The notes under the pieces: generated by a model
What the model saw: only the letters and a program-made list of their open reading frames with translations
The model's database searches: none
What the model was told of the DNA's origin: nothing
Part shown: positions 5,080-50,460 of the stretch, piece by piece
How the letters are laid out: every line of letters starts with the position of its first letter
Numbering within the stretch: the stretch's first letter is position 1
Program-made: the position numbers and the translations under genes
NCBI GenBank assembly: GCA_002269645.1
Contig: NIVC01000708.1
Coordinates: 310,001-374,000, forward strand
Direction of reading: 5' to 3'
Length of the DNA stretch: 64,000 nucleotides
Origin: Macrostomum lignano
Lineage: Eukaryota

Positions 5080-18532
<13,453 letters not shown>

Positions 18533-19739: not shown

Positions 19740-21610
19740 TTTAGATTAGCCATCCATTCTGTTCCTTCATCAGTGATGCTGGCTAGGTTAGCCATCCATT
19801 CTGTTCCTTCATCAGTGATGCTGGCTAGATTAGCCATCCATTCTGTTCCTTCATCCGTGATGCTGGCTAGATTAGCCATCCATTCTATTCCTTCATCAGT
19901 GATGCTGGCTAGATTAGCCATCCATTCTGTTCCTTCATCCGTGATGCTGGCTAGATTAGCCATCCATTCTGTTCCTTCATCCGTGATGCTGGCTAGATTA
20001 GCCATCCATTCTATTCCTTCATCAGTGATGCTGGCTAGATTAGCCATCCATTCTGTTCCTTCATCCGTGATGCTGGCTAGATTAGCCATCCATTCTGTTC
20101 CTTCATCCGTGATGCTGGCTAGATTAGCCATCCATTCTGTTCCTTCATCAGTGATGCTGGCTAGATTAGCAATCCATTCTGTTCCTTCATCAGTGATGCT
20201 GGCTAGATTAGCCATCCATTCTGTTCCTTCATGTGTGATGCTGGCTAGATTAGCCATCCATTCTATTCCTTCATGTGTGATGCTGGCTAGATTAGCAATC
20301 CATTCTATTCCTTCATCAGTGATGCTGGCTAGATTAGCCATCCATTCTATTCCTTCATGTGTGATGCTGGCTAGATTAGCCATCCATTCTATTCCTTCAT
20401 CACTGATGCTGGCTAGATTAGCCATCCATTCTGTTCCTTCATCAGTGATGCTGGCTAGATTAGCCATCCATTCTATTCCTTCATCCGTGATGCTGGCTAG
20501 ATTAGCCATCCATTCTATTCCTTCATCAGTGATGTTGGCTAGATTAGCCATCCATTCTATTCCTTCATCAGTGATGTTGGCTAGATTAGCCATCCATTCT
20601 ATTCCTTCATCCGTGATGCTGGCTAGATTAGCCATCCATTCTATTCCTTCATCAGTGATGTTGGCTAGATTAGCCATCCATTCTATTCCTTCATCAGTGA
20701 TGTTGGCTAGATTAGCAATCCATTCTATTCCTTCATGTGTGATGCTGGCTAGATTAGCAATCCATTCTATTCCTTCATGTGTGATGCTGGCTAGATTAGC
20801 AATCCATTCTATTCCTTCATGTGTGATGCTGGCTAGATTAGCAATCCATTCTATTCCTTCATCAGTGATGCTGGCTAGATTAGCAATCCATTCTATTCCT
20901 TCATCTGTGATGTTGGCTAGATTAGCAATCCATTCTATTCCTTCATCCGTGATTCTGGCTAGATTAGCAATCCATTCTATTTCATTCATCCGTGATTATG
21001 GCTAGATTAGCAATCCATTCTATTTCATTCATCCGTGATTATGGCTAGATTAGCAATCCATTCTATTCCTTCATCCGTGATTTGGCTAGATTAGCAATCC
21101 ATTCTATTCCTTCATCCGTGATTCTGGCTAGATTAGCAATCCATTCTATCCTTCATCTGTGATGTTGGCTAGATTAGCAAACCATTCTATTCCTTCATCC
21201 GTGATTCTGGCTAGATTAGCAATCCATTCTATTCCTTTATCAGTGATTCTGGCTAGATTAGCAATCCATTCTATTCCTTCATCTGTGATTCTGGCTAGAT
21301 TAGCAATCCATTCTATTCCTTCATCCGTGATTCTGGCTAGATTAGCAATTTATTCTATTCCTTCATCTGTGATGTTGGCCAGATTAGCAATCCATTCTAT
21401 TCCTTCATCCGTGATTCTGGCTAGATTAGCAATCCATTCTATTCCTTCATCTGTGATTATGGCTAGATTACCAATCCATTCTATTCCTTCATCTGTGATG
21501 TTGGCCAGATTAGCAATCCATTCTATTCCTTCATCCGTGATGCTGGCTAGATTAGTAATCCATTCTATTCCTTCATCTGTGATGCTGGCTACGAGTAGAT
21601 TAGCGATCCA
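19740..21610. repeat. 42-bp minisatellite between the convergent MCM3 and ptc 3' ends
   Basis: Unit CCATCCATTCT(A/G)TTCCTTCATC(A/C/T)GTGATGCTGGCTAGATTAG; a multiple of 3, giving long open frames on both strands. Confidence 0.96.
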
Positions 21611-22315
21611 TTTTACTCCTTCATTCAAGACGGAGACTCGGCGAGTTGGTGCTCAATGAACACAGGTGAACAGCGAGGTAATCGGAGCAGTCAGTGTGCT
21701 GCACTGTATTTGTTGCATAATAAATAGCACTGGGCAAATATAAATAGACAAACACTGGCACATCTTGCATTGGTAAACCAATTTAGGATAATGCAGCTAC
21801 ATTAAATAACAAAAACAGAATATGCATAGCAGTAATAGTATTTGCAGGCGGTGCAGGTGTGTCGCAGGTGCAGCATTGGCAGTAAAGCAGGGAGAGTATG
21901 ATCATATGACAGCCACCTCTCTATCGGCTACTGTTCATCGTAGAATGAAATGCAGTTCAGTTTCGGAGGTTTGCAAAACGGGTTATGGTGAGGCATTGTT
22001 AATATAAGAAACTACAACAAAGAAACAAAAATACAGAATGTACTTCTGCTGCAATACAGGTGTGTACTGATTAGTGAGTTGTAACCGGTTGGGGAGAAGC
22101 TGCTTTCAACTTTTTCAGCGAGCGAAGACTTTATATAAACAAATCGAGCACCAGTGATTTCATAAAAATCCTTCCACATGCGCACTTTGCTACTGCTCAG
22201 TGGCCGAGTTAGTAGCGTGAAAGGCAACTTCCAACGAATGATGCGTTTAAAGCTTTCGTTAGATTGCAGTAGAAATGCCGAATTGAAAGTCACGTGATTT
22301 GGCTCGCACCCGCTC

Positions 22316-25300
22316 TCACACGTGGCTGATCGGAGCGCCGAAAAATCGGCCGCCAGCCGGGGCGGCGCGCACAAATCGCGGGGGCGGCGGCGGCGGCGCG
22401 CCCTGCTGCGGGAGGTAGAGGCGCAGCGTGGCCGTCACCACCTGCTGCTGCTGCCGGTGCTGCTGGAAGGCCGCCGAGCTGCCCAAAATCGGCGGCGTTG
22501 CAGCTGGCGAGGCTTCGCCGCCGCTCTCCTCCGGGATGGTGTTCAGCGACCGCTGGCTGGCCGTGTAGGCCGCCTCCGCCGCAGCCGCAGCCGCCGCCTC
22601 CGGGTAGCTGGGCGGCGAGGGCCGCACTGGCGGCGGCGGCGACTCGTCTGAGGAGGCGGAGGACGAAGAAGATGAGGAGGACGGCGAGGAGCCCCGTCGG
22701 CGCCTCCGAGATCGCCTATGTCGGTGCGCGGCCGGCCGCCTGCCGTTCTCGTCCTCGCTGTCGCTGCTGTAATCGTCATAGTCGTCGTTGGAGCTCGGCG
22801 ACGCGCCCGACTGCTGCAGTGCCTGCCGACGTGGCGGCTTCGGTGACGGCGGCGGCCGGAGGTGGTGCGGCGGCAGCGCCTGAGGTGCCGGACTGGCGAC
22901 GGCGGCCACCAAGGCGGCATTGGCGACGGCGGCAGCGACCCCAGCGACCAGCGGGCCGCCCAGGCAGGCGGTCAGCAGCGGCGAGCCCGGGAAGGCGGAG
23001 GCAGCAAAGGCGGCCAGGGCGGGCGGAGCGGCCAGGGCGGCGGCCCAGAGCAGCGCCGCCAGCGGCCAGTCCGGCCTGAACTGCGGCCTCCGCTTCGACA
23101 GCTGCTGCTGCTGGCCTGAGGCCTCCACGTTGTCGCTTCTCTGCTTCTGTCTGCTTCCAGAGTCTGCCTCTTCTGCCGGCCTGGTGTCTTCTGCTCCTGG
23201 CCAGGGGGTCAGGGCCAGTTCGGCGGCGGCGGGGGACGGCGGTGGCTGCAGGCTGAGTTGCTGCAAAGTGGGGGAGGAATTGTTAGCTTTGCAGCCACCC
23301 TCACCATCTCAGTCTCACCCACCTCAGTCTCACCCACCTCAGTCTCACCCACCTCAGTCTCACCCACCTCAGTCTCACCCACCTCAGTCTCACCCACCTC
23401 AGTCTCACCCATCTCAGTCTCACCCACCTCAGTCTCACCCATTTTACCCTCACCATCTCAGTCTCACCCATTTTACCCTCACCATCTCAGTCTCACCCAT
23501 CTCAGTCTCACCCATGTCACTCTCACCCATGTCACTCTCACTTATCTCACTCTCACCCATCTCAGTCTCCCCCATGTCACTCTCACCCATCTCACTCTCA
23601 CCCATGTCAGTCTCACCCATCTCACTCTCACCCATCTCAGTCTCCCCCATCTCACTCTCACCCATGTCACTCTCACCCATGTCACTCTCATCCATCTCAC
23701 TCTCACCCATGTCACTCTCACCCATTTCACTCTCACCCATCTCAGTCTCACCCATCCCAGTCTCCCCCATGTCACTCTCACCCATCCCAGACCCCCCATG
23801 TCACTCTCACCCATCCCAGACCCCCCATGTCACTCTCACCCATCCCAGACCCCCCCATGTCACTCTCACCCATCCCAGACCCCCCCATATCACTCTCACC
23901 CATCCCAGACCCCCCATGTCACTCTCACCCATCCCAGACCCCCCATATCACTCTCACCCATCCCAGACCCCCCATGTCACTCTCACCCATCCCAGACCCC
24001 CCATGTCACTCTCACCCATCCCAGTCCCCCATGTCACTCTCACCCATCCCAGACCCCCCATGTCACTCTCACCCATCCCAGACCCCCCATGTCACTCTCA
24101 CCCATCCCAGACCCCCCCATGTCACTCTCACCCATCCCAGTCCCCCCCATGTCACTCTCACCCATCTCACCCAGCTACATGCCACCCTCGCACATCCTAC
24201 TCTCCTCGGCGCCCCGGAGCCCAGCCACTTACAAAGACCAGCATCAGGTTCACAAAGAACATGACGGGAAAGGCCAGGGCCGCTCCTGTGCAGGTCAGCA
24301 GATTCAGAGGAATTCCAGATGCCCACAGCATCGCAGCCAGCTGCAGCAGGTTGATTAGGCACAGCGCGGACTGCAATTTATGGGATGTTGGTGAGGGCCG
24401 ATGAAGGATTTGTCATGGTGGAGATGGAGAGAGGTCAGTTGACCCCCCCCCCAAAGATCCTCACTCACTAATCCACAGACTAAAAACTTCATACAAGACA
24501 AAAAAATCGCAGCAGAACTCACGCAGACTACTGCCGGCAGTAGTTTGCAGAAGACGGCCAGGCTGGCCAGGGCGGCGGCGGCGAGCAGCAGCGACATCAG
24601 GCCGGCCATCTTGCCGGCGTCGATCCAGTCGGGAGAGTGAAAGTCGAACACTGGCCCGGACACCGTGTGCTGCAGGCCCAGCTGACTGAATCGCTGGCTG
24701 ACGTCCTTGATTCGAGCCCCGGCCTGCAGGTAGGCCCTCGTGCTGTTCAAGCCGCTGAGCTGGAGCACGCTCTGCACGAGTTCGAGCTCCTTGGACGGCG
24801 GAATGTACTGCAGATGGGGGTGCCTGGGCTGCACAGCGTACTGCTCCGGCTTGGGCAGCAGCAGGGAGTTGGCGGACTCGTAGGACATGCCGGACTGGGA
24901 ATACCAGCTGGTCAGGCAGGTGTAAAACCTGCCAGGGCTGATCACCCCGTGCTTGTCCACCAGCCGGCCCCTGTCCGCCTCCAGCTGCGGGATTCGGGAT
25001 TATTGGGGTGGCGATTCGTTGCCTGGATTTCTCACCTGCCTGCATCTCCTTTCTCACCTGTCTGCATCTCATTTCTCACCTGCCTGCATCTCATTTCTCA
25101 CCTGTCTGCATCTCATTTCTCACCTGCCTGCATCTCCTTTCTCACCTGTCTGCATCTCATTTCTCACCTGCCTGCATCTCATTTCTCACCTGCCTGCATC
25201 TCCTTTCTCACCTGTCTGCATCTCATTTCTCACCTGCCTGCATCTCATTTCTCATCTGCCTGCATCTCGTTTTCACCTGCCTGCATCTCATTTCTCACCT

Positions 25301-28300
25301 GTCTGCACCTTATTTCTCGCCTGCCTGCATTTCATTTTTAACCTGCGAGAATCTCATTTCTCACCTGCCGGAATCCCATTTCTTTTCTTACCTAATTCTC
25401 TTTTAATTCAACACAAAATATCCAATCTTTACCTACCTGAATCACAATGCACCCACTTGAATCCCATTCAACCCACCTGAATCCCAGTCAACCCACCTGA
25501 ATCCCATTCAACCCACCTGAATCCCAGTCAACCCACCTGAATCCCATTCAACCCACCTGAATCCCATTCAACCCACTTGAATCCCAGTCAACCCATCTGA
25601 ATCCCATTCAACCCACCTGAATCCCATTCAACCCACCTGAATCCCATTCAACCCACCTGAATCCCAGTCAACCCACCTGAATCCCATTCAACCCACCTGA
25701 ATCCAATTCAACCCACCTGAATCCCATTCAACCCACCTGAATCCCAGTCAACCCACCTGAATCCCATTCAACCCACCTGAATCCAATTCAACCCACCTGA
25801 ATCCCATTCAACCCACCTGAATCCCATTCAACCCACCTGAATCCAATTCAACCCACCCACCTGAATCCCATTCAACCCACCTGAATCCCATTCAACCCAC
25901 CTGAATCCCATTCAACCCACCTGAATCCCATTCAACCCACCTGAATCCCATTCAATCCACCTGAATCCCATTCAACCCACCTGAATCCCAGTCAACCCAC
26001 CTGAATCCCTGTCAATCACGCAGAGAACTCCCTCTTCCTATTCCCAGGTGACTCACCGCAGTCAGGTCGTACTCATCGAACCTGCCAGTCTGCACGAGCA
26101 GGTGAGCAGCCAGAATGCCTTCGTCCGAGGCGGCCTCGGTGAAGTTCAGGCCGTCCTCCTTGGAGCTGAGCCTCGTGCTGATGCTGCCCAGCCGAACGTC
26201 CTCGTCAAAGCGGCTCTGCAGGCGCAGCAGCCAGGCCCGGAACTCGTCCAGCCAGAACGGGCCGCTGCCGCTGCTATTGGCGAATGGCAGCTCGGCCAGG
26301 GCGAGGAACAGCCGCCTGGTGAGCAGCTGCTGACGAGGGTAGTCGATTTTCTGAGGGTCGGCGGGGTGGCGGGTCGGAAGGGCTTGGCCACGCGTGCTGG
26401 GTCTGCTGGGTCTTGTTTAATCCCTGTCTCAACAACAGCTCGAATCCCACCCGAATCCCACCCAAATCCTAGCCAAATCCCATCAGAACCCCACCCAGCC
26501 CCATCAGAATGCCACCCCAGCCCCATCAGAATCCCACCCCAGCCCTATCAGAATGCCACCCCAGCCTCATCAGAATCCCACCCCAGCCCTATCAGAATTC
26601 CACCCCAGCCTCATCAGAATACCACCCAGCCTCATCAGAATCCCAACCCAGCCTCATCAGAATCCCACTCCAGCCTCATCAGAATGCCACCCCAGACCCA
26701 TCAGAATCCCACTCCAGCCTCATCAGAATCACACCCCAGCCCCATCAGAATCCCAACCCAGCCTCATCAGAATGCCACCTCAGCCCCATCAGAATCCCAA
26801 CCCAGCCTCATCAGAATGCCACCTCAGCCCCATCAGAATCCCAACCCAGCCTCATCAGAATGCCACCCCAGCCCCATCAGAATCCCAACCCAGCCTCATC
26901 AGAAGGCCACCCCAGCCCCATCAGAATCCCAACCCAGCCTCACCCCAATGCGGAGCTGCAGTGCTGAGTCAGCGTACAGCAGTCTCCTGTTAGCCAGGAA
27001 GGTGAACTCCTGGCAGCGGGCCGGCAGCAGCTCCACCGGGTTGTAGTCGGTCAGCTCGGCCAGGCGCCAGCAGGCGACACCGCCAAGAAGGCAGGCGGAG
27101 CCGACGCCGATTCCAGCCAAGATGGCTGCCAGCCAGCGCCGCCGACGCGTGCTCAGGCATCGGGCAACCCGATGGTCGAGACGGCTGCCCAGGCTGCGCG
27201 GCAAGGAGAGCTTCGCGCTGGCTGACTCTCTGGCCAATCGGCAGCAGACCAGGTCGGCTCCGAGGCGCCGCCGTCGGGCGCAGTCGGCGGCCAGAACGGC
27301 AGGCACGCCGGCCAGGCACAGCAGGGCCAGCTGCAGTCCGTTGGCTGCCCAGTGCCGGCAAAGAAGGCGAACGGCGGCCAGGGGGGTCAGCAGGGAGCCG
27401 GCGGCGGCCGCCTGGCACACCAGCAGGAATGCCAGGGTCTGGGGCGCCGTGCGCTGCATCAGCACTGGGATGACGGCCTGCGGGATTGGGGTCGTTTGAG
27501 GATGGTTTGTTGGTGGGAGTGGGAAGACTAATCTATGAGAAAGATAGTCTATGGGAAGAAGTCTGGGAAGAACAGTATGGGAAGAAAATTCTATGGGAAG
27601 AACAGTCTATGGGTAGAATAGTCTATGGGAAGAATAGTCTATGGGAAGAACAGTCTATGGAAAGAACATTCTATGGGAAGAAAAGTCTATGGGAAGAATA
27701 GTCTATGGGAAGAATAGTCTATGGGAAGAACAGTCTGGGAAGAAAAGTCTATGGAAAGAACATTCTATGGGATGAACATTCTATGGAAAGAACAGTCTAT
27801 GGGAAGAACAGTCTATGGGAAGAACAGTCTATGGGAAGAACAGTCTATGGGAAGAATAGTCTATGGGAAGAATAGTCTATGGGAAGAATAGTCTATGGGA
27901 AGAATAGTCTATGGGAAGAACAGTAAGTCTATGGAAAGAACAATGAATATGGAAAGAAAGTCTATGAAGAACTCTATGGGAAGAACAGTCTATGGGAAGA
28001 ATAGTCTATGGTAGTCTATGGGTCGTGCGAAAGGAAATGACTCCATCATCACAGGTGGGGTCGTGGGGAGAAGGAACTCACGTGATGCTGGGCAGGCTCG
28101 CTAGTCTGGTACAGGTGATTGTAGCAATTGGCCATTAGCAAGCAATAGAAGGTGCCGATTCCCAGCTGAACAAATGGCAGCACCTGTAGGAATGGAGCAG
28201 GTGTGTTTTTAATTTTCATAATATAATGATTTATTTAATGTCAAGCGGGATACACAATTCCAAACTTGATTGATTCTTCCGATTTCAGATTCGAATCCTA

Positions 28301-31300
28301 CCAGTATATACGATATTCCCCAATCCCGATAGTTAAATCTAGGAACTATCCCCAATTCTAGACATAAAATCACGGCTCATATCCAAAATCCCTGTTCCCA
28401 AATACCGATTATTAAATCCCGATTCTCGAATATCAAATCCCGAATCCCTGCTTTCGAATACGAGATCCCAAATCCTAGATCCCGAATCCCAGATCCCACA
28501 GCTAAAATCCCAAATCCCAGGTCCCAAATTCCAGATCCCAACTCCCAGATAAAAAATTCCAGATCCCAAATCCCAATGATTCCCAACTCTCAGATCCCAA
28601 ATAGCAGATCTCCAATCCCAGATTTCAAATCCCAGATCTCGAATCCCAGATCCCAAATCCCAAATCTTCAACCCAATATACCAATACCCGATCCCGGATC
28701 CCAGCACGCACCTGCACGGACAGCAGGTCCAGCGGCACGCGGCACCAGCAGGCGAGCCCGAGGCCGCCGGTGACGGACAACAGCAGCAGCGGCAGGGTCA
28801 GGCAGGCGACAGTCAGCTGGCTGTGCAGCAGCGAGTGCGAGTCGAACAGGACGGCCATGGCGTAGGCGCAGCAGCCGGCGATCAGGAGGCTCCACTTGGT
28901 CCAGTGAACGGCGCGGGTGGCCTCGCCGAGAGCCTCGTTGACTGACTGCTGCTCGTTGAATGCCACGAAGATGGGCTCCCCGTGCCGGCTGTTCTCCTCG
29001 GCGACCAGCTGCGGGGGCGGGTAGTGGTCTTGAGTTCGAGTCCCAGCAAAAAAACAATACACAGTCCCAATCCAGAGTCCTAACAGTCACACAGTCCCAG
29101 TCCCGAGTCCCAACAGTCACACAGTCCCAGTCCCGAGTCCCAACAGTCACACAGTCCCAATCTCGAGTCCCAACAGTCACACAGTCCCAGTCCCGAGTCC
29201 TAACAGTCACACAGTCCCAGTCCCGAGTCCCAACAGTCACACAGTCCCAGTCCCGAGTCCCAACAGTCACACAGTCCTAGTCCGAGTCCCAACAGTCACA
29301 CAGTCCCAGTCCCGAGTCCCAACAGTCACACAGTCCTAGTCCCGAGTCCCAACAGTCACACAGTCCTAGTCCTGAGTCCCAACAGTCACACAGTCCCAGT
29401 TCCGAGTCCCAACAGTCACACAGTCCCAGTCCCGAGTCCCAACAGTCACACAGTCCTAGTCCTGAGTCCCAACAGTCACACAGTCCCAGTTCCGAGTCCC
29501 AAAAGTCACACAGTCCCAGTCCCGAATCCGGCGCGCCCACCTTGTTAAAGTGCTCCCACCAGGCGTCCAGCAGCCGCTTAGTCTTATCAAGCGACCAGTC
29601 GTTAAGCGGTTGATTTTGCCGATATTCGCGCAGCAGATGTTCGGGACTCTTGAGCACCAAGGCGCTGAGCAGAGCCCGGCCGCTAGTCAGCCGGCCAGTG
29701 TCTGGGTCGCGGCTGGCGCCGCCAATCAGCTTCTCGGCTGGCCAGTTGATGAGCTTCTCGGCGAAGCCGGAGCAGCCGGGGCTCAGCGTGTCCAGCACGC
29801 TGTGGTTGGCCCTGGCCCGGCCGTCCGGGGGGCATTGCGGATCGCCGGGGTCCAGGCAGGGGCGCCGGGTGTAGCCGTGCCTCAGGCCCACGCTGGACAG
29901 GGCCCGGGCCAGTCGGTCTATCGGGTGATGACGCCGCTCGGAGTCTGGGGACGCGCCTGGGTGCTTAGGCGGGAAGCTGCTAGTCTTGATAATGCGGGTG
30001 TATGACTGCAGCACCGACTGCGGGTCCAGGTTGGTCCAGCGGTAGGTCCGGTCCAGGTCCTTCAGGCTGGCCGGCGATGCGTTGGGGAGGCTGCGAACGG
30101 GAGCGGATTGGAGATGGAGAAGAGTGAGATTTCAGGTGGTTTAGGGTGAAATTGTAGATGGAAAAGGACGAGCTTGGGGATTACGGCACGAGATTGAGTA
30201 GATTAGGGTGAGATTTAGGGGATTAGGGTGAGATTTAGGGGATTAGGGTGAGATTGAGGGGATTAGAATGAGATTGAGGGGATTAGGATGAGACTGAAGG
30301 AATTAGGGCGAGATTGAGAGGATAAGGGTGAGATTGAGGGGATTAGGGTGAGATTGAGGGGATTAGGGTGAGATTGAGGGGATTAGGGTGAGATTAAGGG
30401 GATTATGGTGAGCTGAAAGACAGAGATAGGTGATATTGTGGAGGGAGAAGGGTGAAATTGCAAATAGATGGAGAGGATATTAGGGCTACTAAAAGTCAGA
30501 ATATATCTTTTTGTTTTCTGTTTACTAAGCCCTACTCAGAGTAGCGTGTTCAGCGCATTCCAGCGCATCCAGCAGCAGAATGTAGAAAGCAAGGCCGGCA
30601 GGCAAATGGAAAGTGAGCCAGTTGAGTCAGCAGGGCACTGGCTGGACTCTCACGCACCGGGGGACCCCCAGGCTGATGACTTTTTTCTCTTTTTTTCGAA
30701 GCACTTACTCTATTAAGAAAGAAGACAGGCAGGCGGTCACAGGTAGAAAATGAGAATTCGCAGTGAGAGTGGCGAATGCGAGTATCCAGTGGGGGGGGGG
30801 TATCCCGAGTTTTGAGTCATCTGATTCAAGCAGTTTGAGACTCATTCAAGAGGCGCAGAGCTCGCCAATGCGCAGTGAAATGATTTTGAGGCAGGAGTTG
30901 AGCTGACAGGCACGCAGACAGATATGAATCTATGAGTATGAGACATTCTGGCTGAGCTGGGGACCCACCGCAGCCGCTTTGTCTTCCGAGTGGGAGGGGC
31001 TCGGAGCGCATCTGTGCTTGAATTCCATTCCATAAAAGACAGTCGCCACTTGCCAGGCGCAATTTGGCCACTGTGTTCCTTTTTGGCGGGCAAATTCTGA
31101 GTTGGGTTATTCATACGGCCTGTTATTATTGGGGACTTTGACGATTTTGAGGAATCGGGATCTCAGAATCGGGATCTCAGAATCTAGATCTCAGAATCGG
31201 GGTTGCAGAATCTAGATCTCAGAATCGAGATTTCAGGGTCGGGATTTCAGAGTCGGGATCAAGATCTCAGAATCGGGATTTCAGAGTCGGGATCAAGATC

Positions 31301-34300
31301 TCAGAATCGGGATTTCAGAGTCGGGATCAAGATCTCAGAATCGGGATTTCAGAGTCGGGATCAAGATCTCAGAATCGGGATTTCAGAGTCGGGATCAAGA
31401 TCTCAGAATCGGGATTTCAGAGTCGGGATCAAGATCTCAGAATCGGGATTTCAGAGTCGGGATCAAGATCTCAGAATCGGGATTTCAGAGTCGGGATCAA
31501 GATCTCAGAATCGGGATTTCAGAGTCGGGATCAAGATCTCAGAATCGGGATTTCAGAGTCGGGATCAAGATCTCAGAATCGGGATTTCAGAGTCGGGATC
31601 AAGATCTCAGAATCGGGATTTCAGAGTCGGGATCAAGATCTCAGAATCGGGATTTCAGAGTCGGGATCAAGATCTCAGAATCCGAGGGGATTTCAGAGTC
31701 GGGATTTCAGAAATGCGGCTCTCACTAGCTGCCCATCAGTCCGATTCCCGGCAGCCGGACTGACCCCCTCGGCCCGAGCAGCTTGGCGCCCTCCCAGAAG
31801 CAGTCCAACGGGGTGACAATCCGGCAGGGCAGCAGGGCCTCCATGAAGCCGCGCACGTGATCGGGGATCTCCAGCTGGCCGAGGTCGAATTTCAGGCACA
31901 GCTGCTCCAGCCTGATGGATTGCACGGGCAGGTTGAAGACTCGAACGTCTGCGCTGACTACCCGTTCCAGCAGGCGCATGTGGGCGAGCAGCTGCCGCTT
32001 CGTCAGGACGGAGTCCGCGGCGGTGTTGTCGTCGGCGGCGTCGGCTGATGGCGGCTCCTGCCGACGAGAGGGGAGCTGCATGAGCAGCTGAGTTGAGGAG
32101 GACATCACGCTGGGATAGTTGCGGAGCAGCTCTGAGTCCTGGGCCTTGGCGCTGCGACCTTCGTCTGTGGGTTGAGTGGGAGATGGAATTAGGCTAACCC
32201 TTCTCTGTTGTGAGTAAACTGGAATGGTCAGATTCTGAAGTTGGAATTGTCAGATTCTGAAATTGGAATGGTCAGATTCTGAAGTTGGAATTGTCAGATT
32301 CTGAAGTTGGAATTGTCAGATTCTGAAGTTGGAGTTGTCAGATTCTGAAATTGGAATTGTCAGATTCTGAAGTTGGAATTGTCAGATTCTGAAGTTGGAA
32401 GGGTCAGATTTTGAAGTTGGAATTGTCAGATTTTGAAGTTGGAATTGTCAGATTTTGAAGTTGGAATTGTCAGATTCTGAAATTGGAATGGTCAGATTCT
32501 GAAGTTGGAATTGTCAGATTCTGAAGTTGGAATTGTCAGATTCTGAAGTTGGAATTGTCAGATTCTGAAGTTGGAGTTGTCAGATTCTGAAATTGGAATT
32601 GTCAGATTCTGAAGTTGGAATTGTCAGATTCTGAAGTTGGAATTGTCAGATTCTGAAATTGGAATTGTCAGATTCTGAAGTTGGAATTGTCAGATTCTGA
32701 AGTTGGAATTGTCAGATTTTGAAGTTGGAATGGTCAGATTCTGAAATTGGAATGGTCAGATTCTGAAATTGGAATTGTCAGATTCTGAAATTGGAATGGT
32801 CAGATTCTGAAATTGGAATTTTCAGATTCTGAAACAGGAATTGTCAGATTCTGAAATTGGAATTGTCAGATTCTGAAGTTGGAATTGTCAGATTCTGAAA
32901 TTGGAATTGTCAGATTCTGAAGTTGGAATTGTCAGATTCTGAAATTGGAATTGTCAGATTCTGAAGTTGAAATTGTCAGATTCTGAAATTGGAATTGTCA
33001 GATTCTGAAGTTGGAATTGTCAGATTCTGAAATTGGAATTTTCAGATTCTGAAACAGGAATTGTCAGATTCTGAAATTGGAATTGTCAGATTCTGAAACA
33101 GGAATTGTCAGATTCTGAAATTGGAATTGTCAGATTCTGAAGTTGGAATTTTCAGATTCTGAAACAGGAATTGTCAGATTCAGAGCTAGAATTTCGGCCT
33201 TGGCAGCTGCTGGCAATGTTAATTTGCACTTTTAAGGCCAGGTCACAAGACACGAAACTGTAACCAGCTAAAAATTTATCTATCTTCAAAATCTGGCGTC
33301 AAACGTTTGCCAAAGACCACCCAGGTCGGGGGCTGGCTCTTCTCCGTCTTCCCTGTCTTCAAAACGCATTATCAAGTTTGCAGTAAACTGAACCCGAGCC
33401 CCACAATCATTCTCATTTGGCATCCCCACCTCACGGCATAATCTAAAGACTGCACCGAAGCTGCCAGAGGGCAGTTCTTAAACAATATTTCCTGCGGCAA
33501 AAAAATGTTCTCCAAGTTCAAGTTCGCCACTGCATCCTGGCGCTTATGTTGTAAAATCATGGGAATGAGCTTGTAAAAATATAACCAACTTTACCGCCAC
33601 AATATATAATTATTAAGGAGAGCTGAGAGGGGGGACCATTGCGCACAACACAGCCGCTGAGCTGATGGGATAGTGGAAAGAACTAAACGAAGAAGGGCTC
33701 AGAGTTCTGAGGCAGAGGTGAGGCAATGCTGAGGCAGAGGTGAGGCAATGCTGAGGCAGAGGTGAGGCAATGCTGAGGCAGAGGTGAGGCAATGCTGAGG
33801 CAGAGGTGAGGCAATGCTGAGGCAGAGGTGAAGCAATGCTGAGGCAGAGGTGAGGCAATGCTGAGGCAGAGGTGAAGCAATGCTGAGGCAGAGGTGAGGC
33901 AATGCTGAGGCAGAGGTGAGGCAATGCTGAGGCAGAGGTGAGGCAATGCTGAGGCAGAGGTGAAGCAATGCTGAGGCAGAGGTGAGGCAATGCTGAGGCA
34001 GAGGTGAAGCAATGCTGAGGCAGAGGTGAGGCAATGCTGAGGCAGAGGTGAGGCAATGCTGAGGCAGAGGTGAGGCAATGCTGAGGCAGAGGTGAGGCAA
34101 TGCTGAGGCAGAGGTGAGGCAATGCTGAGGCAGAGGTGAGGCAATGCTGAGGCAGAGGTGAGGCAATGCTGAGGCAGAGGTGAGGCAATGCTGAGGCAGA
34201 GGTGAGGCAATGCTGAGGCAGAGGTGAGGCAATGCTGAGGCAGAGGTGAGGCAATGCTGAGGCAGAGGTGAGGCAATGCTGAGGCAGAGGTGAGGCAATG

Positions 34301-37300
34301 CTGAGGCAGAGGTGAGGCAATGCTGAGGCAGAGGTGAGGCAATGCTGAGGCAGATGTGCGGCAGAGGTGAGGCAGAGATGAGGCAGATTTAATCCAGAGA
34401 TCCCTCAGTGCCACTGCTACGAGCATAAGTCAGCACATGATTGCAATTCAGACCCACAGCACAGGCGGACAGGGTAACTGCCTTAGTGGCATAAACTATC
34501 TTGAATAACAAAAGCAGCAGAAGCGTCTCCGAGCGCTTTGTATAAACAGTTATGAGGGGAGCTGGAATTTCCTGCGATACTGTTGGCTTTGCAGAGCGGA
34601 ATTCTGCTGGAACCACCGCAGTCTGCAGCCATTAATTTATTAAGGTCGATGTTTTTGTAGCGATGGAGACTAAGTTTCGCTATTTCTGGGGCGAAACCCT
34701 TCTGGTAGGATCAGAATTGGATCAGTTTGGGAAGGGGATTCTTTTAATTGCGGGGATGAATTCGGTTTGCGGGAATCCGGACTTTTAACTAGGGACTCTG
34801 GGACTTCGACCCGGCATTGGGGAGTGAAACTATCATTGTGGGATTTCTGAGATCGGGATTTAATTATTGGGTCTCAAGGATTATCAGGACTTGATGATTG
34901 GGAAACAAAGATCAGGACTTGATGATTGGGAAACAAAGATCAGGACTTGATGATTGGGAAACAAAGATCAGGACTTGATGATTGGGAAACAAAGATCAGG
35001 ACTTGATGATTGGGAAACAAAGATCAGGACTTGATGATTGGGAAACAAAGATCAGGACTTGATGATTGGGAAACAAAGATCAGGACTTTTTGATCGGAAA
35101 CCAAGGATTGGGACTTTGTGATCGGGAACCAAGGATTGGGACTTTGTGATCGGGAACCAAGGATTGGGACTTTGTGATCGGGAACCAAGGATTGGGACTT
35201 TGTGATCGGGAACCAAGGATTGGGACTTTGTGATCGGAAACCAAGGATTGGGACTTTGTGATCGGGAACCAAGGATTGGGACTTTGTGATCGGAAACCAA
35301 GGATCGGGACTTTATGATCGGGAATTGATGATCGGGAACCAAGGATCGGGACTTTATGATCGGGAACCAAGGATCGGGACTTGATGGTCTGGACTAAATC
35401 GGGACTTGATGGTCGGGACTATATCGGGAATTGATGGTCTGGACTGGATCGGGAATTGATGGTCTGGACTGGATCGGGACTTGATGGTCGGGACTATATC
35501 GGGAATTGATGGTCTGGACTGGATCGGGAATTGATGGTCTGGACTGGATCGGGAATTGATGGTCTGGACTGGATCGGGAATTGATGGTCTGGACTGGATC
35601 GGGAATTGATGGTCTGGACTATATCGGGACTTGATGGTCGGGACTATATCGGGAATTGATGGTCTGGACTGGATCGGGAATTGATGGTCTGGACTGGATC
35701 GGGAATTGATGGTCTGGAACAATGATTCCGACTCAATCATCGGGACCCAAGCACCTAGAAATTGTTACTCAATGATTGGGGTTTTATGATTGGGACTCAA
35801 GGATCGGGGACTCAATAATTGAAGCACAAGGATTGGGACTGAATGGATCTTTGTCGGTCACCAACAAGAAAGTACTTGTTAAAAGAGCCACCCCATCAAT
35901 CATGCTGCACAGCAACGTCAAGCCATTGCGAGCTATTAGTAAACAATTAAAGATCAAAAAAATGAATTTTAATTTTACTGCTGCCACAAGGCGGGGCACA
36001 AAATTTCACGCAGGTTTTCACTTTATCTTGGAAAAAATTTCATATTAACAGAGTTGCAAGCGGGACGGCGCACAGCACAGGCCACCAGCACAATAGCTAG
36101 ATGAATGCATAACCCCCTTAATAACCCATTGGCGTGGGTGGCCATTTTGTGGTCTCTCTCTCTCTCTCCCACCTTCGACCCCCGGCCGCAGCGAGCATTG
36201 CATATTTAATAAGGGTATTCTTGTCTTTCGCGTCTCTTTTCAATTTTTTACTGCATATACAGTCTTCTGCCCTTCGGATAGGGAGAGGGAGAGAGAGAAT
36301 TCTGTGCGGCTGCAGCAGTCTGCGGTGGGTTCCTGCACTCCTTCATCACTTTATATCTGTGTGGCCGCCGCTGCTGTTTCGCAGCCAGAGTTTAATCTTG
36401 CCAAAGCTGCACGCGCGCTGAACAAAACTGCTCGCATACTGCAGGGAGGGGGTTGCGAGAAGAACGGGCAGGGCGGGCATGAAATAAGAAAATGGCCCGC
36501 TTCTAGGAGAGAAGGGGGAGCTCTTATGCAGCATTGGGCCACCCAGGCAGTCGAGTTTCCGGGGGGGGGGGTTGCTGGCATAGCTAGGTGCGCAGAAAGT
36601 GGTATTATAAATAATAATAATACTATAAATCTATACAATAATACGGTGTGTGTTATATGTGATGCCCAGCAGAAACTGGCGGACACACACGACTCTGACG
36701 GATTTGCTGAAATCGGATTGCGGTCAGCAATAGACAGCAAGCAATGCAGGGCGCTGCATTATGAACAGCGAGTTCGTTTCAGCGCAAAAAATTCTTTTGA
36801 AACAGTCAGTCAGCTATTGAATTCTTTTAACTTAAATCTTGTGCGCAGTTCAGACAGCTGGGAACCTGCAGTTCTATACTGAGAACACATTTTCGTCCGA
36901 GAATGAAAACTATTTGGAAAAGTTTTCTCTGTGTGCACAAAAATCATTTTCTTTTCTCGAAATGAAAGCTTGAAACAATGTGTTGGAAAATTGCTATTTC
37001 AACAAACTTGTACCGATACATACATTGGCCGCATAGGGGAGTTTTTATCATAATTGCAAAAGTAACGAGAATATTAATCCCCTTCTTTCCAGCTGAAGAG
37101 CTGCGAGAATTCCATTTAGTTAACCCCGAGCTATTATTTCAGTGCAAAAGCAATAAAAGTGGTATTTACTAGCAGAAGAATTTCTGCTTTTAGTGTGGAA
37201 TTCAATATAGCTACTGTATACAGACGGTGAGCTACACTGGAACCCGTTTAGATCTTTTTCATCACTGATGCGTGCAGTCAGCTTTTTCCTCAGCGAAAAG

Positions 37301-38401
37301 GGGGTGGAAATTGAGAGGAGAGAATGGAGTGGAGTTGAGAGGAGATTGGGGGAGTGGAGAGGAGATGAGAGGAGAGAAGAGGACAGGAGGTCACGCTTCA
37401 CACACAACTGCCATAGCGTCGAGGCCGGTAATGGAGAGCAAAGGAGAGGAGATCAGATCAGAGGAGATGGAATGAGAGGACAGGAATAGAGTGGAGAGGA
37501 GATCAGAGATCAGATGAGATGAGAGGAGAGAAAAGATCAGATGAGATAAGAGGAGAAGAGATCAGATGAGATAAGAGGAGAAGAGATCAGATGAGATGAG
37601 AAGAGATCAGATCAGAGGAGATGAGTTGGGATTTATTTGCATTCATGCCAAATTGCACCATGATTATGGACGAACAGAGAGACGAGAGAAAAGAAGAGTT
37701 CTGATAAGACGAGATTAGAATTAGATGTGCGAGATGAGAAGAGGTGAAATAAGCTGAGAGACAAGAGGGGGTGAGATGAGATTTGAGAAGACAGAGCAGG
37801 ATAAGATAAAAGTGAAGTGAAGAGAAGATGAAAGGAGATATGAAACCAAGACATTTAATTAAAATGCCAAACTGAGGCCAAGCTCTCTGAGACTCACCTG
37901 ACATCCAAAACTGGGTGAAATCCGTGTCAAAGCGGGCATCCTTGAGGCCCAGAGTGCAGAGGCTGAACGCCACCAGAGTCAAGAACAGGAACAATTTCCA
38001 CTGACGGGTGACGGCTACTCCGTACTGATATGAGACCTTCTGGCAGAAATAGGTCACCGACTGTTGCCATGGCCGTTTGGAGCACGCGAACTCGTGAGCA
38101 TAAAGGCTTTGCTGCAATTAAGTGATCGAGTAAATTTGCGGGTTAGGGAAGAAGACTGGAAGAGATAGACGTTTATAAGATGAGCAGTGGAGCGAGCAGA
38201 CATTGAGCCTTTAAAATAAGACCTTAGATTAGAGCAGAGGCAAGTAGATAAGAGAAATAAGTAACAATAAATCACCTGCGACAGCTGCATGTCATCTGTG
38301 GCAGAGGGTCGTTGACTTCCGCACCGTCCTAGATTTTGATGCTGTTGCCGCTGGTGGTGGCTAGTCCGCTGCCCCCCTTGGTGTCGATAATAGCCGCTCA
38401 T
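22316..38401 (-). CDS. ptc: Patched-family 12-TM RND-like receptor (divergent), 11 exons, 1366 aa
   Basis: Exons (transcription order) 38401-38276, 38111-37898, 32164-31726, 30090-29541, 29008-28712, 28183-28082, 27477-26944, 26350-26057, 24984-24523, 24370-24233, 23260-22316; all GT-AG, phases consistent, total 4101 nt. Patched signatures: LGLKDARFDTDFTQFWM (TM1), LPCRIVTPLDCFWEGAKLL, RWTNLDP, GYTRRPCLDPGDPQCP, WPAEKLIGG, VQVLPFVQLGIG, IDYP, FWLDEFRAWLLRLQSRFDED, LLVQTG, RLVDKHGVISPGRFYTCLTSW, and C-tail PPSY. Confidence 0.93.
23295..24170. repeat. 15-bp minisatellite grading into a 30/31-bp higher-order unit, ptc intron 10
   Basis: (CACCTCAGTCTCACC)n changes to CATGTCACTCTCACC and then CCCATCCCAGACCCCCCATGTCACTCTCA. 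Confidence 0.95.
25025..26015. repeat. Two arrays in ptc intron 8: 22-bp (TCTCATTTCTCACCTGCCTGCA)n at ~25025-25310 and 20-bp (AATCCCATTCAACCCACCTG)n at ~25455-26015
   Basis: Direct tandem repeats. Confidence 0.94.
26445..26943. repeat. ~22-bp minisatellite (CCCCAGCCTCATCAGAAT...)n, ptc intron 7
   Basis: Direct tandem repeat. Confidence 0.92.
27530..28020. repeat. 16-bp minisatellite (GTCTATGGGAAGAA(C/T)A)n, ptc intron 6
   Basis: Direct tandem repeat. Confidence 0.92.
28300..28700. repeat. Degenerate 7-bp repeat (ATCCCAG/ATCCCAA)n, ptc intron 5
   Basis: Diverged short-period repeat. Confidence 0.8.
29065..29525. repeat. 30-bp minisatellite (CAGTCCCAGTCCCGAGTCCCAACAGTCACA)n, ptc intron 4
   Basis: Direct tandem repeat. 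Confidence 0.95.
30195..30410. repeat. 20-bp repeat (GATTAGGGTGAGATTGAGGG)n, ptc intron 3
   Basis: Direct tandem repeat. Confidence 0.9.
31155..31712. repeat. 34-bp minisatellite (TCAGAATCGGGATTTCAGAGTCGGGATCAAGATC)n, ptc intron 3
   Basis: Near-perfect direct tandem repeat. Confidence 0.96.
32220..33185. repeat. 22-bp minisatellite (GAATTGTCAGATTCTGAAGTTG)n, ptc intron 2
   Basis: Direct tandem repeat. Confidence 0.96.
33315..33323 (+). promoter_or_regulatory. Perfect Gli/Ci consensus site GACCACCCA in ptc intron 2
   Basis: Exact match to the established Gli consensus in unique sequence between two arrays; a 1-mismatch site TGGGTGGCC lies at 36135-36143. Function is inferred. Confidence 0.5.
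33705..34385. repeat. 22-bp minisatellite (GAGGCAGAGGTGAGGCAATGCT)n, ptc intron 2
   Basis: Near-perfect direct tandem repeat. Confidence 0.96.
34885..35720. repeat. Three consecutive related arrays (28-bp, 28-bp, 25-bp units sharing GGGA.T/GAT), ptc intron 2
   Basis: ATCAGGACTTGATGATTGGGAAACAAAG, then GGATTGGGACTTTGTGATCGGGAACCAA, then CTGGATCGGGAATTGATGGTCTGGA. Confidence 0.92.
37310..37830. repeat. GA-rich low-complexity repeat (GAGAG/GATCA/GATGA), ptc intron 2
   Basis: Short-period purine-rich sequence. Confidence 0.8.
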
Positions 38402-40349: not shown

Positions 40350-43300
40350 TCAGTTCTGCTTGCCGATAAGCTGGCGCAGCACGATGTTTCGCGTCCGTCC
40401 GCCTGGAGCCCGAACTTTAACGCCATCGGCACTCCGCGCACGACTCAGAGCCACGTAGAGCTGGCCATGCTGAAAGCAAGCCGTCGTCAGGTCGACGGCG
40501 TAGGTGCCCAGCGACTGGCCCTGGCTCTTGTGGATGGTCATGGCGAAGCACGGCCGGATCGGGAACTGCAGACGGCGGAAAACAAACGGAACCTCGGTTG
40601 GGCTCGGCTCCTGCGGGATCCGCGGGATGAACACCTGCCGCGAACGGTAGACGCCGGTGGTTACCTCCGCTAGCAGGACGTTGTCACGCAGTTCGCGCAG
40701 CAGCAGCCGAGTCCCATTGCACAGCAGCGGTGGGTCCAGATTCCGCATCATGACGACCGGCATGCCGACCTTCAGCTCCAGTCGGTGATGCGACATACCG
40801 CTGGGGTCCAGCCGGTTCAGCAGCTCCGGCGGAAAATTAGTGGCTGCCGTGTCGTCATTCGGAATCGAGTCGACAGATAAGTAGACTCGACTCTCACCGG
40901 GGAAGAGCGCTAAGCAGGCGGCGTTGGCCTCGTCCACCGTCCTATTGAGTGGCGCCAGGATGCTCCGCTCCGCGAACATCTGGTCACGCTGCGCACTCGG
41001 CTCAAAGGACGGGTAAACGTGCCGGATGAGCTGCTCAGTGGTTGTGTCCTCGGGCAGAAGGATCTCGCTAGGCAAGGAGACCATGCCCTCAACGTCCTCT
41101 GGCAGCTCCCCGTTGCCAACCTGACGGTGAAAAAGACGGTGAAAATTTTACAATTTTTTCCTTCAATTCGCATGCTTAATGAGAGCATAGAAACTCCATA
41201 GATTCTCACCTGCATAAGAAAATCCGCGTAGCTTTGGAGAGCCGAGCCGCCCTCCAGCCGCAGATTCCTTGTGAGCTGGTGCTGCCTGAAGTGCGACCAC
41301 AGCACCGACCGATTCAGGCAGGCTTCAATCGTGTTGGCCTGCGTCCCTCCGGGCACAACAGCAAGCAACTGGCGAAAGTCGCCAGCCAGCACCAGCAGCG
41401 CTCCCCCGAACGGCTGCCCACCGTACAGCAAATCCCGCAGAGTACGCTCGACGATCTCGAGGTCTTTGCGGTGCGTCATCGGAGCCTCGTCCCACACGAT
41501 GAGGCGGGCGTTCCGCAGAATCTCCGCCAATTTGCTCCGCCTGCCGATGGAGCAGAAGGCGCTGTCCTGCCGTACAGCGCAGACGGGGATCTTGAACCTG
41601 TAGGCAGGTATCGCGAGGATTTTCAATTGTGAGGATAAATTAGGCTTGCCTTTCTGTGCTTAAAAATGAACCGTTTATAAAATGATTGATGCAGACACAA
41701 AACTCACATCGAGTGGGCGGTCCGACCTCCGGGAAGAATAGTCGCCGCGATGCCCGATGACGCGACGGCAACAGCAATTAGACGCCTTGCTCGAACCGAC
41801 TTCAGCAGAAGCGTGAGCAGGAACGTCTTGCCTGTGCCTCCAGGAGCGTCAATAAAATGCAGCCCGCCGCCACCGGCCGTCAGATTGGACTGCACGGCCT
41901 CGAAGACAGCTCGCTGCTCGTCAGTCAGAGTAGCGACCAGCGCATCCACTTCAGACTGCAGCTCAGCAGCTTCTTGCGGCGTCGGCAGGCAGTCAGAAAG
42001 AAGCCGAGTCTGGATATTGAGAAGAAGCTGTCATCAGTAAGCTATTAAAGGTTAAAAATATCAACAGTCAGTGTGCATAGCAGTGAGTTCATTTACTTGA
42101 TCCGCTTCTGCCGGTGGTTCAGGAAGGCCGTAGGCAGACAGCTCGGATCCGCCCATCCGCTCCAGCCGCTTCTGCAGCGACCGCAGCACTTCGGCCCTAG
42201 CAGCCTCGGCGCTCAAGCCCTGATGCAGCAGGTCGCCAGCCATCTCGCGGGAAAACTCCTCCCAGAGCTTGGCGGGGTCGCTGGGATCGCCGTGCGCCAA
42301 AATTGCGGCAAAAAGTCGGCGCAGAGCAGCAGGCATCCGCGTCTGGGCGGCCTCGTACAGACACAGCTGCCAGTGCCTGTCGTCTTCCAGCAGTCCGCGA
42401 GCCTGGCAGGCGGCCTTGAAGGTCGGCAGCAGGACTCCGTCAACAGTGCGCAGAGCCTCGAACGAAGTCGGGCCGCGCACATTCACCAGCAGCAGGCGCA
42501 GGTAAAAACAGTCGCCCATCCGAGGACTGACTGTATAGATGCGGCCGATGTTGCTGGTCGTCAGAACATCGGCTGGCTGATCAGCAGCGACTCGGCCGCG
42601 ACCTGCGCGATGCCACTGGTGCGCCCTGGGGTCCCAGGTGAAGTGCCGGGGTACCTCCTGGTACAGCAGACCTCGGGCGATTTCGTCATGGCGACAGAGC
42701 TGGGCGGGTAGGAACAGGAAAGTGGGCGGGTAGAAACAGGAAGGAGGAATAAATTGAACAAATTGCACTTCGAGCAAAACTCACATCGAAGAAGGCGGTC
42801 AAAGTCGTGGCCTTGGGCGTAGCAGCAACAGCCTGAGCTGTCTCGTCAGTGAAAAAGACCCGCTGCTCGTCCTTAAGATGAACCGCGAGCCTGATCACAG
42901 GCGGGTATCGGCTGTGCACCTCGAAGCCCAGGATGGTGTTAACCGCCTCCATTGGACCGATGAACCTGCCCAGTAGGTATTCGTCGATCTCGTCGATCTT
43001 GCGTCGCTTTGCGGAAGTCGCAGCAGCAGCAGCAGCAGTCCCAGTCGACGTGGACGGACCGGCGATCGCCAGTGGTCCTTCAGTGGCCGAATCAGCGCTG
43101 GCATTCGCAGCAGCCGCCGACTCCTTGCGGATCTGGTATGCTGCCATGTCGCTACCCTTGGTGATGTACTTCACCACGTACTTGATGGCCCGAACTGTCG
43201 CGCAGATCTCGACATTCAGGTGACAGCGAAACTCGCGCAGCAGCGCTGGGCAGTACGGCACCACCCAGCGGTTGTCAAAGGTGAACATCACCCTTTGACC

Positions 43301-46300: not shown

Positions 46301-46724
46301 CGCCTTCAGCCTCACGGCATTCGGCTGTGCGCAGTCGATCCGCCTCAAGGCGATGCTGGTGCTCAACTTCGCCTTCAGCCTCACGGCATTCGGCTGTGCG
46401 CAGTCGATCCGCCTCAAGGCGATGCTGGCGCTCAACTTCGCCTTCAGCCTCACGGCATTCGGCTGTGCGCAGTCGATCCGCCTCAAGGCGATGCTGGCGC
46501 TCAACTTCGCCTTCAGCCTCACGGCATTCGGCTGTGCGCAGTCGATCCGCCTCAAGGCGATGCTGGCGCTCAACTTCGCCTTCAGCCTCACGGCATTCGG
46601 CTGTACGCAGTCGAGTCGCCTTAAGGCGATGCTGGCGCTCGTCGGGTGTCTCCGACGCCCTGCGCTTCTTGGCTGCCGATGCAGCGCGCGTTGAACGGGA
46701 AATATTTCCGCGTTTCGGTGGCAT
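40350..46724 (-). CDS. Helitron Rep/Pif1 helicase transposase (RepHel), 9 exons, 1621 aa, no stops or frameshifts
   Basis: Exons 46724-46111, 45584-45467, 45207-44634, 44377-43739, 43623-42785, 42699-42097, 42027-41708, 41597-41210, 41120-40350 (4866 nt). Contains 23-aa STPR-like repeats, Zn-finger-like CPHCSALRWKDEPASICC, Rep motifs FLTMTCNPKWPEI / EYQKRGLPHVH / YVVKYITKG, and Pif1 motifs DAPGGTGKT, GRTAHS, WDEAPM, GDFRQL, CNGTRL, AMTIHKSQGQSL, QLYVALSR. Confidence 0.95.

Positions 46725-49721: not shown

Positions 49722-50460
<739 letters not shown>

Follow-up and report, generated by a model that had tools for sequence, protein, structure and literature searches.

The window analysed here, 64,000 nucleotides of Macrostomum lignano DNA (assembly GCA_002269645.1, contig NIVC01000708.1, positions 310,001 to 374,000), carries on its minus strand a gene for the Hedgehog receptor Patched (Ptc). 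Splice sites read from the sequence, combined with spliced alignment, give 11 exons that run from an ATG at 38401 to a stop codon at 22316. All introns are GT-AG, with strong acceptor and donor sites of the CAG and GTGAGT type. The membrane domain of the predicted protein has lost the acidic residues associated with ion-coupled transport, and its ectodomains retain the conserved features of the family. The best explanation, in which we have middling confidence, is that this intact gene is the M. lignano Patched orthologue and that its product would be a non-transporting receptor whose maintained ectodomain still binds ligand.

The exons, all on the minus strand, follow the order of Patched domains. 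Exon 1 (38276..38401, donor GTGATT) contains the ATG at 38401 and an N-terminal cytoplasmic segment, and corresponds to residues 1-42 of UniProt A0A1I8HIG6 (P0001, Macrostomum lignano, 828 aa), of which exons 1-8 together are an exact copy. Exon 2 (37898..38111), placed by spliced alignment to the same entry and bounded by a CAG acceptor and a GTGAGT donor, encodes the first transmembrane (TM) helix, TM1 (WKLFLFLTLVAFSLCTLGL), and the start of ectodomain 1, and is modelled by AlphaFold2 with a predicted local distance difference test score (pLDDT) >90. Ectodomain 1 continues through exon 3 (31765..32131), which includes PCRIVTPLDCFWEG (31829-31788) and aligns to ectodomain 1 of PTCH1, and exon 4 (29541..30090), which includes RPCLDPGDPQCP (29864-29829); it ends in exon 5 (28712..29008), where TM2 and TM3 begin the sterol-sensing domain. 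TM4 is encoded by exon 6 (28082..28183; 102 nt, 34 aa, VLPFVQLGIGTFYCLLMANCYNHLYQTSEPAQHH), and the same exon is present in UniProt models P0001-P0004. Within it, VLPFVQLGIGTFYCLL at 28183-28136 contains the motif GIGTFY at 28162-28145.

The second half of the protein begins in exon 7 (26944..27477), with TM5, TM6, a short cytoplasmic loop, TM7 and the start of ectodomain 2; by direct count the TM5-TM6 span is 71 aa, equal to that of PTCH1. Ectodomain 2 extends over exon 8 (26057..26350, donor GTGAGT) and into exon 9 (24523..24984), which carries FYTCLTSW (24927-24904), TM8 and the start of TM9. Exon 10 (24233..24370) contributes 46 aa of TM9-TM10, with the same sequence in P0010, P0011 and P0025, and its junction with exon 11, NLMLVF joined to QLSLQ, is confirmed by UniProt A0A1I8INB3 (P0010). 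Exon 11 (22316..23260) encodes a TM10-TM11 loop insertion, Ala-rich TM11 and TM12, and a low-complexity C-tail that ends at the stop codon (22318-22316). The tail contains a PPSY motif (22615-22604, minus strand), consistent with endocytic turnover of the Nedd4 type, which other Ptc proteins undergo.

A first-pass annotation of this DNA had described an uninterrupted 1366-aa open reading frame (ORF). The frame is indeed intact, but the length is close rather than identical, at 1342 or 1360 aa according to the choice of exon 9 donor. The end of this exon has two in-frame GTGAGT donors, separated by 54 nt (24469-24522, minus strand). Use of the upstream donor (24522) yields 1342 aa, with AVVC joined to SALCL as in UniProt models P0010, P0011 and P0025, and use of the downstream donor (24468) adds 18 aa (VSSAAIFLSCMKFLVCGL) to give the 1360-aa product. 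We prefer the 1342-aa product because three UniProt models use the upstream donor and because PTCH1-like TM8-TM9 spacing is thereby restored. As a candidate case of alternative splicing, the donor pair may determine whether 18 extra hydrophobic residues are present between TM8 and TM9.

Judged by its sequence, the locus is not a pseudogene, because the ORF is intact (4 kb without a frameshift at ~25% identity to relatives), the splice sites are canonical, the conserved ectodomain cysteines are kept and exons contrast with introns in base composition (exon GC 0.67 and GC at third codon positions, GC3, 0.83; intron GC 0.48). Several nearly identical copies of the gene exist, as expected of the recent polyploid M. 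lignano. Some of the UniProt copies (P0002, P0003, P0004, P0011 and P0025) contain stretches that are out of frame and then return to frame, and in P0025 the model is joined to a RING-domain neighbour. We attribute the frame-shifted copies to indels of the older PacBio assembly.

Homology and predicted structure both identify the product as a Patched protein. All 14 of the 14 matches in a HMMER comparison with PDB chains are PTCH1 (best 4e-71, query residues 65-1034), and the ectodomains align with PTCH1 over their full length. Pfam detects only the sterol-sensing domain (PF12349, residues 480-632, 34.9 bits against a cut-off of 22.3), with no match to the Patched model PF02460 at E<=0.01; Dugesia, Schmidtea and vertebrate Ptc, unlike the M. 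lignano protein, do match PF02460. AlphaFold2, run on an alignment of 34 sequences, gave a model (pLDDT 76.9, predicted template modelling score 0.73) that is confident for TM1, ectodomain 1, TM2-6 and ectodomain 2, with pLDDT 82-95 in the sterol-sensing domain TM2-6 and confidence <50 in the TM10-TM11 loop and TM11-12. The top Foldseek matches are PTCH1 structures, with template modelling scores of 0.73-0.77 (query) and 0.80-0.84 (target); NPC1L1 (0.61) and Dispatched (~0.41) score lower. The model has the expected 12-TM architecture of two 1+5 halves, each with a large Patched-fold ectodomain, although TM11-12 are of low confidence.

The membrane domain lacks both features of cation-coupled transporters of the resistance-nodulation-division (RND) type, the TM4 GxxxD(D) and the TM10 GxxxE/D. 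In the HMMER alignment, TM4 GIGTFY lies opposite GVGVDD of PTCH1 (lgigtfycllmancy / lgvgvddvfllahaf), with Phe (TTC, 28150-28148) and Tyr (TAT, 28147-28145) facing D513 and D514 in place of Asp-Asp. TM10 reads LAFPVMFFVN (24277-24248, minus strand), and the residue opposite PTCH1 E1095 is Met (24262-24260) when aligned by MAFFT or Leu when aligned by HMMER. Exon 10, which spans TM9-TM10, encodes no Asp or Glu in any of its 46 aa, and neither residue occurs in any of the 12 predicted TM segments. The motifs quoted in the first-pass annotation thus lie where it had placed them on the minus strand, and its claim that the equivalents of D513, D514 and E1095 are lost holds, with F, Y and M (or L) at these positions.

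A six-frame motif scan over 20-40 kb of the window, on both strands, found no alternative exon encoding GxGxD or GxGxE. The TM4 exon is common to four M. lignano UniProt models and the TM10 exon to three. Because no rescuing exon is present within these 20 kb and the same TM4 and TM10 exons recur across M. lignano models, the loss of acidic residues is real and not an annotation artefact. We also considered whether the GT following GIG is a splice donor that had been read into the intron, and rejected this, as the codons GGC ACC TTC TAT lie within the 102-nt exon. A read-through artefact at TM4 was likewise ruled out by the residue-for-residue alignment with the TM4 exon of PTCH1 and by use of the exon in four UniProt models.

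Conservation is distributed unevenly between the ectodomains and the membrane helices. The conserved ectodomain signatures and cysteines reported in the first-pass annotation were borne out: TPLDCFWEG and PCLDP..CP are present, every column that is Cys in >=80% of 33 other Patched sequences is Cys in the M. lignano ectodomains, and 68/87 ectodomain columns conserved at >=80% are kept. Of the columns conserved in >=75% of 33 other Ptc sequences, M. lignano retains 73% in the ectodomains (85/116) compared with 47% in the TM helices (21/45; P = 0.003, Fisher's test), and the latter value is the lowest of the 17-species panel. Planarian Ptc keep conserved positions evenly (ectodomain/TM 0.63/0.63 and 0.67/0.61), and Drosophila Patched keeps 91% of conserved TM positions. 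An excess of ectodomain over TM conservation is also found in a mite and in the beetle Harmonia, with 0.91 vs. 0.69 in Fragariocoptes. The ratio of TM to ectodomain identity is 0.85-1.0 in flatworm Ptc as against 1.2-1.55 in canonical Ptc.

In a neighbor-joining tree (1009 columns, 200 bootstraps, NPC1 and PTCHD-like proteins as outgroups), the M. lignano protein falls with Dugesia, Schmidtea, Opisthorchis, Mesocestoides and a further trematode-like Ptc (bootstrap 96%), and this flatworm group lies inside a Ptc clade with 92% support against the outgroups. Long-branch attraction is a concern for the flatworm grouping. Exon 11 opens with an insertion of ~60 aa between TM10 and TM11 (23260-23081), which aligns with insertions in Dugesia, Schmidtea, Opisthorchis and Mesocestoides and is absent from the 12 non-flatworm Ptc of the panel alignment. 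A long, variable cytoplasmic insertion in this loop is common to flatworm Ptc (P0052, P0207, P0027, P0029, P0030, P0039 and P0044), and the same set has Arg or Lys 2-3 positions ahead of the site where the TM10 Glu was lost (GLGFRFS, GLGARTA, GLGSKLA). From the aligned sequences, the insertion and the basic residue look like a lineage signature.

Searches for a second M. lignano Patched recovered only this gene. When 1.84 billion representatives were searched exhaustively with HMMER, 269 matches were obtained, and no second M. lignano Patched is among the best 150 of these 269, which we inspected. The top matches that could be named are Patched proteins. The M. lignano entries among them all derive from this gene, as fragments or as frame-shifted copies (P0004, P0010, P0011, P0025 and P0041), and other Patched proteins are only 25-31% identical to it. 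Word-indexed protein searches with the N-terminal half, the C-terminal half and a flatworm Ptc profile (9, 5 and 7 matches) also found none but are insensitive, the profile search having missed three of the four proteins from which the profile was built; the absence of a second Ptc rests mainly on the exhaustive search for this reason. The full-length top matches P0014 and P0015 were considered as possible Macrostomum relatives and rejected, being closest to Drosophila/arthropod-like Patched (37-50% identity) and derived from unrelated RNA-seq and metagenome samples. Since the protein groups with flatworm Ptc, shares their loop insertion and finds only copies of its own gene among the named M. 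lignano matches, the sequence evidence indicates that the locus is the M. lignano Patched orthologue, a member of a fast-evolving flatworm Ptc lineage. It does not appear to be the extra paralog that the first-pass annotation had taken it for.

To what extent is the loss of acidic residues unusual? In the panel alignment, the TM4 motif is GVGVDD in vertebrates, GLGVDH in Drosophila, GIGLDE in Dugesia, GLGLEE in Schmidtea, GLGLDG in Opisthorchis, GLGMEG in Mesocestoides and GIGTFY in M. lignano. The TM10 Glu is missing in 5/5 flatworms and in Drosophila, which has Cys there, and trematode and cestode Ptc retain only the first acidic residue of the triad. The Ptc family has Drosophila Ptc as its founding member. 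In the planarian Schmidtea, RNA interference (RNAi) of hh and of ptc has opposite effects, which identifies planarian ptc as a working pathway repressor. Because working Drosophila and planarian Ptc lack the full triad, two of its three residues are dispensable in nature, and their loss in M. lignano is ancestral or tolerated. The absent TM10 residue is therefore not decisive alone, as it is also missing in the other sampled flatworm Ptc and in Drosophila Ptc. By contrast, the first TM4 position is acidic in all other sampled flatworms (Dugesia D, Schmidtea E, Opisthorchis D, Mesocestoides E), and by this comparison only the loss of the D513-equivalent is new among them.

Loss of the D513-equivalent is, by the same kind of comparison, not unique to M. 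lignano among animals. Proteins annotated as patched or patched-like in mites and a tardigrade that have no TM4 acidic residue include Fragariocoptes KAG9511138 (CIGFHT), Varroa XP_022643645 (SFGGNS), Tropilaelaps OQR67094 (GIGRSG) and the tardigrade Paramacrobiotus XP_055339601 (VTHLQH); the TM10 acidic residue is absent in Fragariocoptes and Paramacrobiotus and kept in Varroa and Tropilaelaps. More broadly, the charged triad is often incomplete in annotated arthropod and tardigrade Patched (P0013, P0016, P0020, P0021, P0032 and P0037), and Harmonia has SIRE. A literature search found no published description of a natural loss of the GxxxD/TM4 acidic residue in Patched. The emphasis of the first-pass annotation on loss of the whole triad is too strong, given that working fly and flatworm receptors had already dispensed with two of its members.

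These observations suggest a sequence of events in which the TM10 Glu was lost first in the flatworm lineage, before the change in Macrostomum, and the last intramembrane acidic residue, in TM4 (human D513, fly D584), was then replaced as well in M. lignano. Cation flow would no longer be coupled to sterol movement, and catalytic repression of Smoothened would cease. Selection would retain the ectodomain and the overall fold, leaving a non-transporting receptor that may bind and probably internalise a Hedgehog-type ligand, or may signal without Smoothened, and the canonical Ptc-to-Smo step would be lost or rewired in M. lignano. There is an experimental precedent for such a separation: mouse PTCH1 D499N/D500N/E1081Q (NNQ) still binds ShhN but neither represses SMO nor lowers inner-leaflet cholesterol (Zhang et al., bioRxiv 10.1101/352443). 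The premise of the first-pass annotation, that the triad is needed for activity, accordingly stands for mouse PTCH1, but Drosophila and planarian Ptc between them work without two of the three residues. We favour a non-transporting receptor because the acidic residues are lost, conservation is skewed from the TM helices toward the ectodomains, the ectodomain cysteines are kept and the NNQ mutant sets a precedent. It is plausible on this evidence that transport was lost and ligand binding retained, and the conservation asymmetry lends independent support to the transport-dead claim of the first-pass annotation; the decoy or dominant-negative action that it went on to propose is pure inference.

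According to a 2026 preprint on Wnt (bioRxiv 10.64898/2026.07.29.741434), the congener M. cliftonense has no Smoothened in its genome, although most flatworms do have it. If Smoothened is also gone in M. lignano, loss of the catalytic residues would follow naturally from the loss of their target. Apart from this remark, our literature search found nothing relevant on Hedgehog signalling in Macrostomum, and the supplementary tables of M. lignano papers that were searched for expression evidence contain no patched, smoothened or hedgehog entries, their sole "Patched" Pfam entry being NPC1. A wider claim, that the sole Patched of M. lignano and perhaps of its close relatives is non-transporting and that the catalytic Patched-to-Smoothened step has been dismantled, is possible but tentative, and we lean against it at present.

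Known systems resemble the M. lignano receptor in part. Planarian Ptc (Djptc BAI49944, P0052; Schmidtea Patched-like D2ILS0, P0207) belong to the same clade and share the loop insertion, the absence of the TM10 Glu and a low membrane-domain identity to canonical Ptc, but their TM4 motifs, GIGLDE and GLGLEE, each contain an acidic pair, in contrast to GIGTFY of M. lignano, and RNAi provides evidence of pathway repression by planarian ptc, whereas the M. lignano gene is known here from sequence alone. Drosophila Patched (P0013 cluster) likewise lacks two members of the triad but, unlike M. lignano, retains the first TM4 Asp. The mite and tardigrade proteins match M. lignano in their TM4 loss and differ in coming from unrelated ecdysozoan lineages. 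Closest in kind are PTCH1 NNQ and Drosophila Ptc D584N, the latter reportedly an engineered mutant that neutralises the TM4 charged position: both have neutral residues at charged positions and an intact ectodomain. In these, point mutations made in the laboratory alter a membrane domain that is otherwise canonical, whereas the M. lignano change is natural, is fixed in all copies seen, introduces bulky Phe and Tyr and is accompanied by wide divergence of TM8-12. A ligand sink without transduction, resembling the role proposed here, is represented by HHIP in vertebrates and PTR-18 in Caenorhabditis elegans. HHIP is a non-transporting Hedgehog sink that, unlike the M. lignano protein, is structurally unrelated to Patched. 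For PTR-18, a sink function has been shown, and both its GXXXDD and its GXXXD/E motif are required (PMC8104386).

Several points weigh against the interpretation of the M. lignano protein as a non-transporting receptor. The PTR-18 requirement raises the prospect, by analogy, that a sink role may itself need transport. TM4 retains polar Thr, Tyr, Asn and His, and some other form of coupling might conceivably run through them. Divergence of the membrane domain does not by itself prove lost activity, because flatworm Ptc membrane domains are divergent as a group and planarian Ptc still works. The C-terminal gene model is less certain, with TM11-12 of low complexity and poorly modelled, and the PPSY motif, which sits in a Pro-rich tail, could have arisen by chance. 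The frame-shifted copies could alternatively be decaying homeologues of a polyploid genome. Finally, a canonical Ptc paralog elsewhere in M. lignano would undercut the interpretation, but appears unlikely from the best 150 of the 269 matches and the insensitive word-indexed searches.

The foremost alternative, which we consider unlikely, is a still-active Patched that works through another coupling path or stoichiometrically, tolerates Phe-Tyr in TM4 and represses Smoothened normally. Parts of the triad are already missing from working receptors, namely Ptc of Drosophila (GVDH, no TM10 Glu) and of planarians (no TM10 Glu), and in M. lignano TM lengths and spacing are preserved and TM2-6 are modelled confidently (pLDDT 82-95). 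However, an acidic residue is present at the D513/D584 position in every functionally tested Ptc and in all other sampled flatworm Ptc, no Asp or Glu in any M. lignano TM helix is available to substitute, and more than half of the family-conserved TM positions are gone (21/45 kept, lowest in the panel). We regard as improbable the first-pass proposal, in which the genome would hold a canonical GxxxDD ptc and, in addition, this transport-dead paralog as a Hedgehog decoy or dominant-negative. The recent polyploidy of M. lignano, the several copies of the locus (P0001-P0004, P0010, P0011, P0025 and P0041) and a search view confined to the best 150 of 269 HMMER matches leave some room for it. Against this, the TM4 exon with FY and the TM10 exon do not vary among the recovered copies, no other M. 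lignano Ptc is among the named top matches, and both the tree position and the flatworm-specific loop insertion are those expected of the species orthologue.

The gene might instead be a relic under relaxed selection, drifting after Smoothened was lost or rewired and retaining little or no function, or a very young pseudogene. The Ala/Leu-rich, low-complexity TM8-12, the low AlphaFold2 confidence of TM11-12, the frame-shifted sister copies in UniProt, the lost match to PF02460 and the reported lack of Smoothened in M. cliftonense (bioRxiv 10.64898/2026.07.29.741434) are all compatible with such drift. We nevertheless think it quite unlikely, as the 4 kb ORF is intact across 11 exons with canonical splice sites and keeps its conserved cysteines and 73% of the ectodomain positions conserved in the family, the decay is domain-specific rather than uniform (P = 0.003), and exon GC3 (0.83) is far above intron GC (0.48). 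More improbable still is a re-purposed receptor with a non-Hedgehog ligand or Smoothened-independent signalling, in the manner of TRA-2, a nematode receptor derived from Patched. The top matches carry Pfam TRA2_N, a domain family common to Patched and TRA-2, and a protein that has lost its transport residues and kept its ectodomain could suit such a role; yet there is no evidence for an alternative ligand, and the ectodomains align to PTCH1 over their full length.

The window also contains a neighboring gene, a transposon remnant and repeats. Exons of an MCM3-like replication helicase (MCM AAA-lid, MCM3 C-terminal winged helix) lie at 14635-18532 on the plus strand, converging on the 3' end of Patched. 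On the minus strand, 40350-45090 holds the remnant of a Helitron-type transposon, with Helitron_like_N (2e-52), PIF1 helicase (6.5e-33) and a Pif1 2B domain; it is split over several overlapping or shifted ORFs and is probably disrupted. Minisatellite arrays occupy every Patched intron and the 3' flank (20000-35718), with periods of 14-44 bp and 10-59 copies (for example at 32220-33181, 33707-34385, 23296-24169 and 20000-21591), and create long spurious ORFs on both strands, such as one of 494 aa at 22920-24404 (plus strand). Tandem-repeat blocks at 46035-46778 and 49722-54171 likewise give rise, on both strands, to long ORFs of repetitive sequence, with a REAEGEVERQHRLEADRLRTAEC-type repeat and poly LSVC/LSIY among them, and Pro/Ser-rich repeats with strong strand skew are found at 52-54 kb.

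M. lignano Patched is a natural variant of a known receptor that is not described before in the literature we found. How Patched silences Smoothened is still debated, and the debate leans heavily on engineered mutants of the TM4 and TM10 acidic residues. The comparison across species adds that the triad is far from universal. Its one member common to working receptors is the first TM4 acidic residue, and this gives a sharper definition of the catalytic residue. A naturally fixed, acidic-free Patched offers a test of which functions survive without ion-coupled transport, be they ligand capture, endocytosis or Smoothened-independent signalling, in a flatworm amenable to transgenesis, RNAi and regeneration assays. 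Interest in the gene would rise further if the Macrostomum lineage proves to lack Smoothened or a canonical ptc. Nematodes have lost Hedgehog and Smoothened and kept a transport-competent Patched. If the proposed reading is true, M. lignano would be the mirror image of nematodes and would provide a natural separation of Patched ligand binding from transport, and, if Smoothened is absent in the lineage, it would reveal a second, different route by which the Hedgehog pathway has been dismantled in animals.

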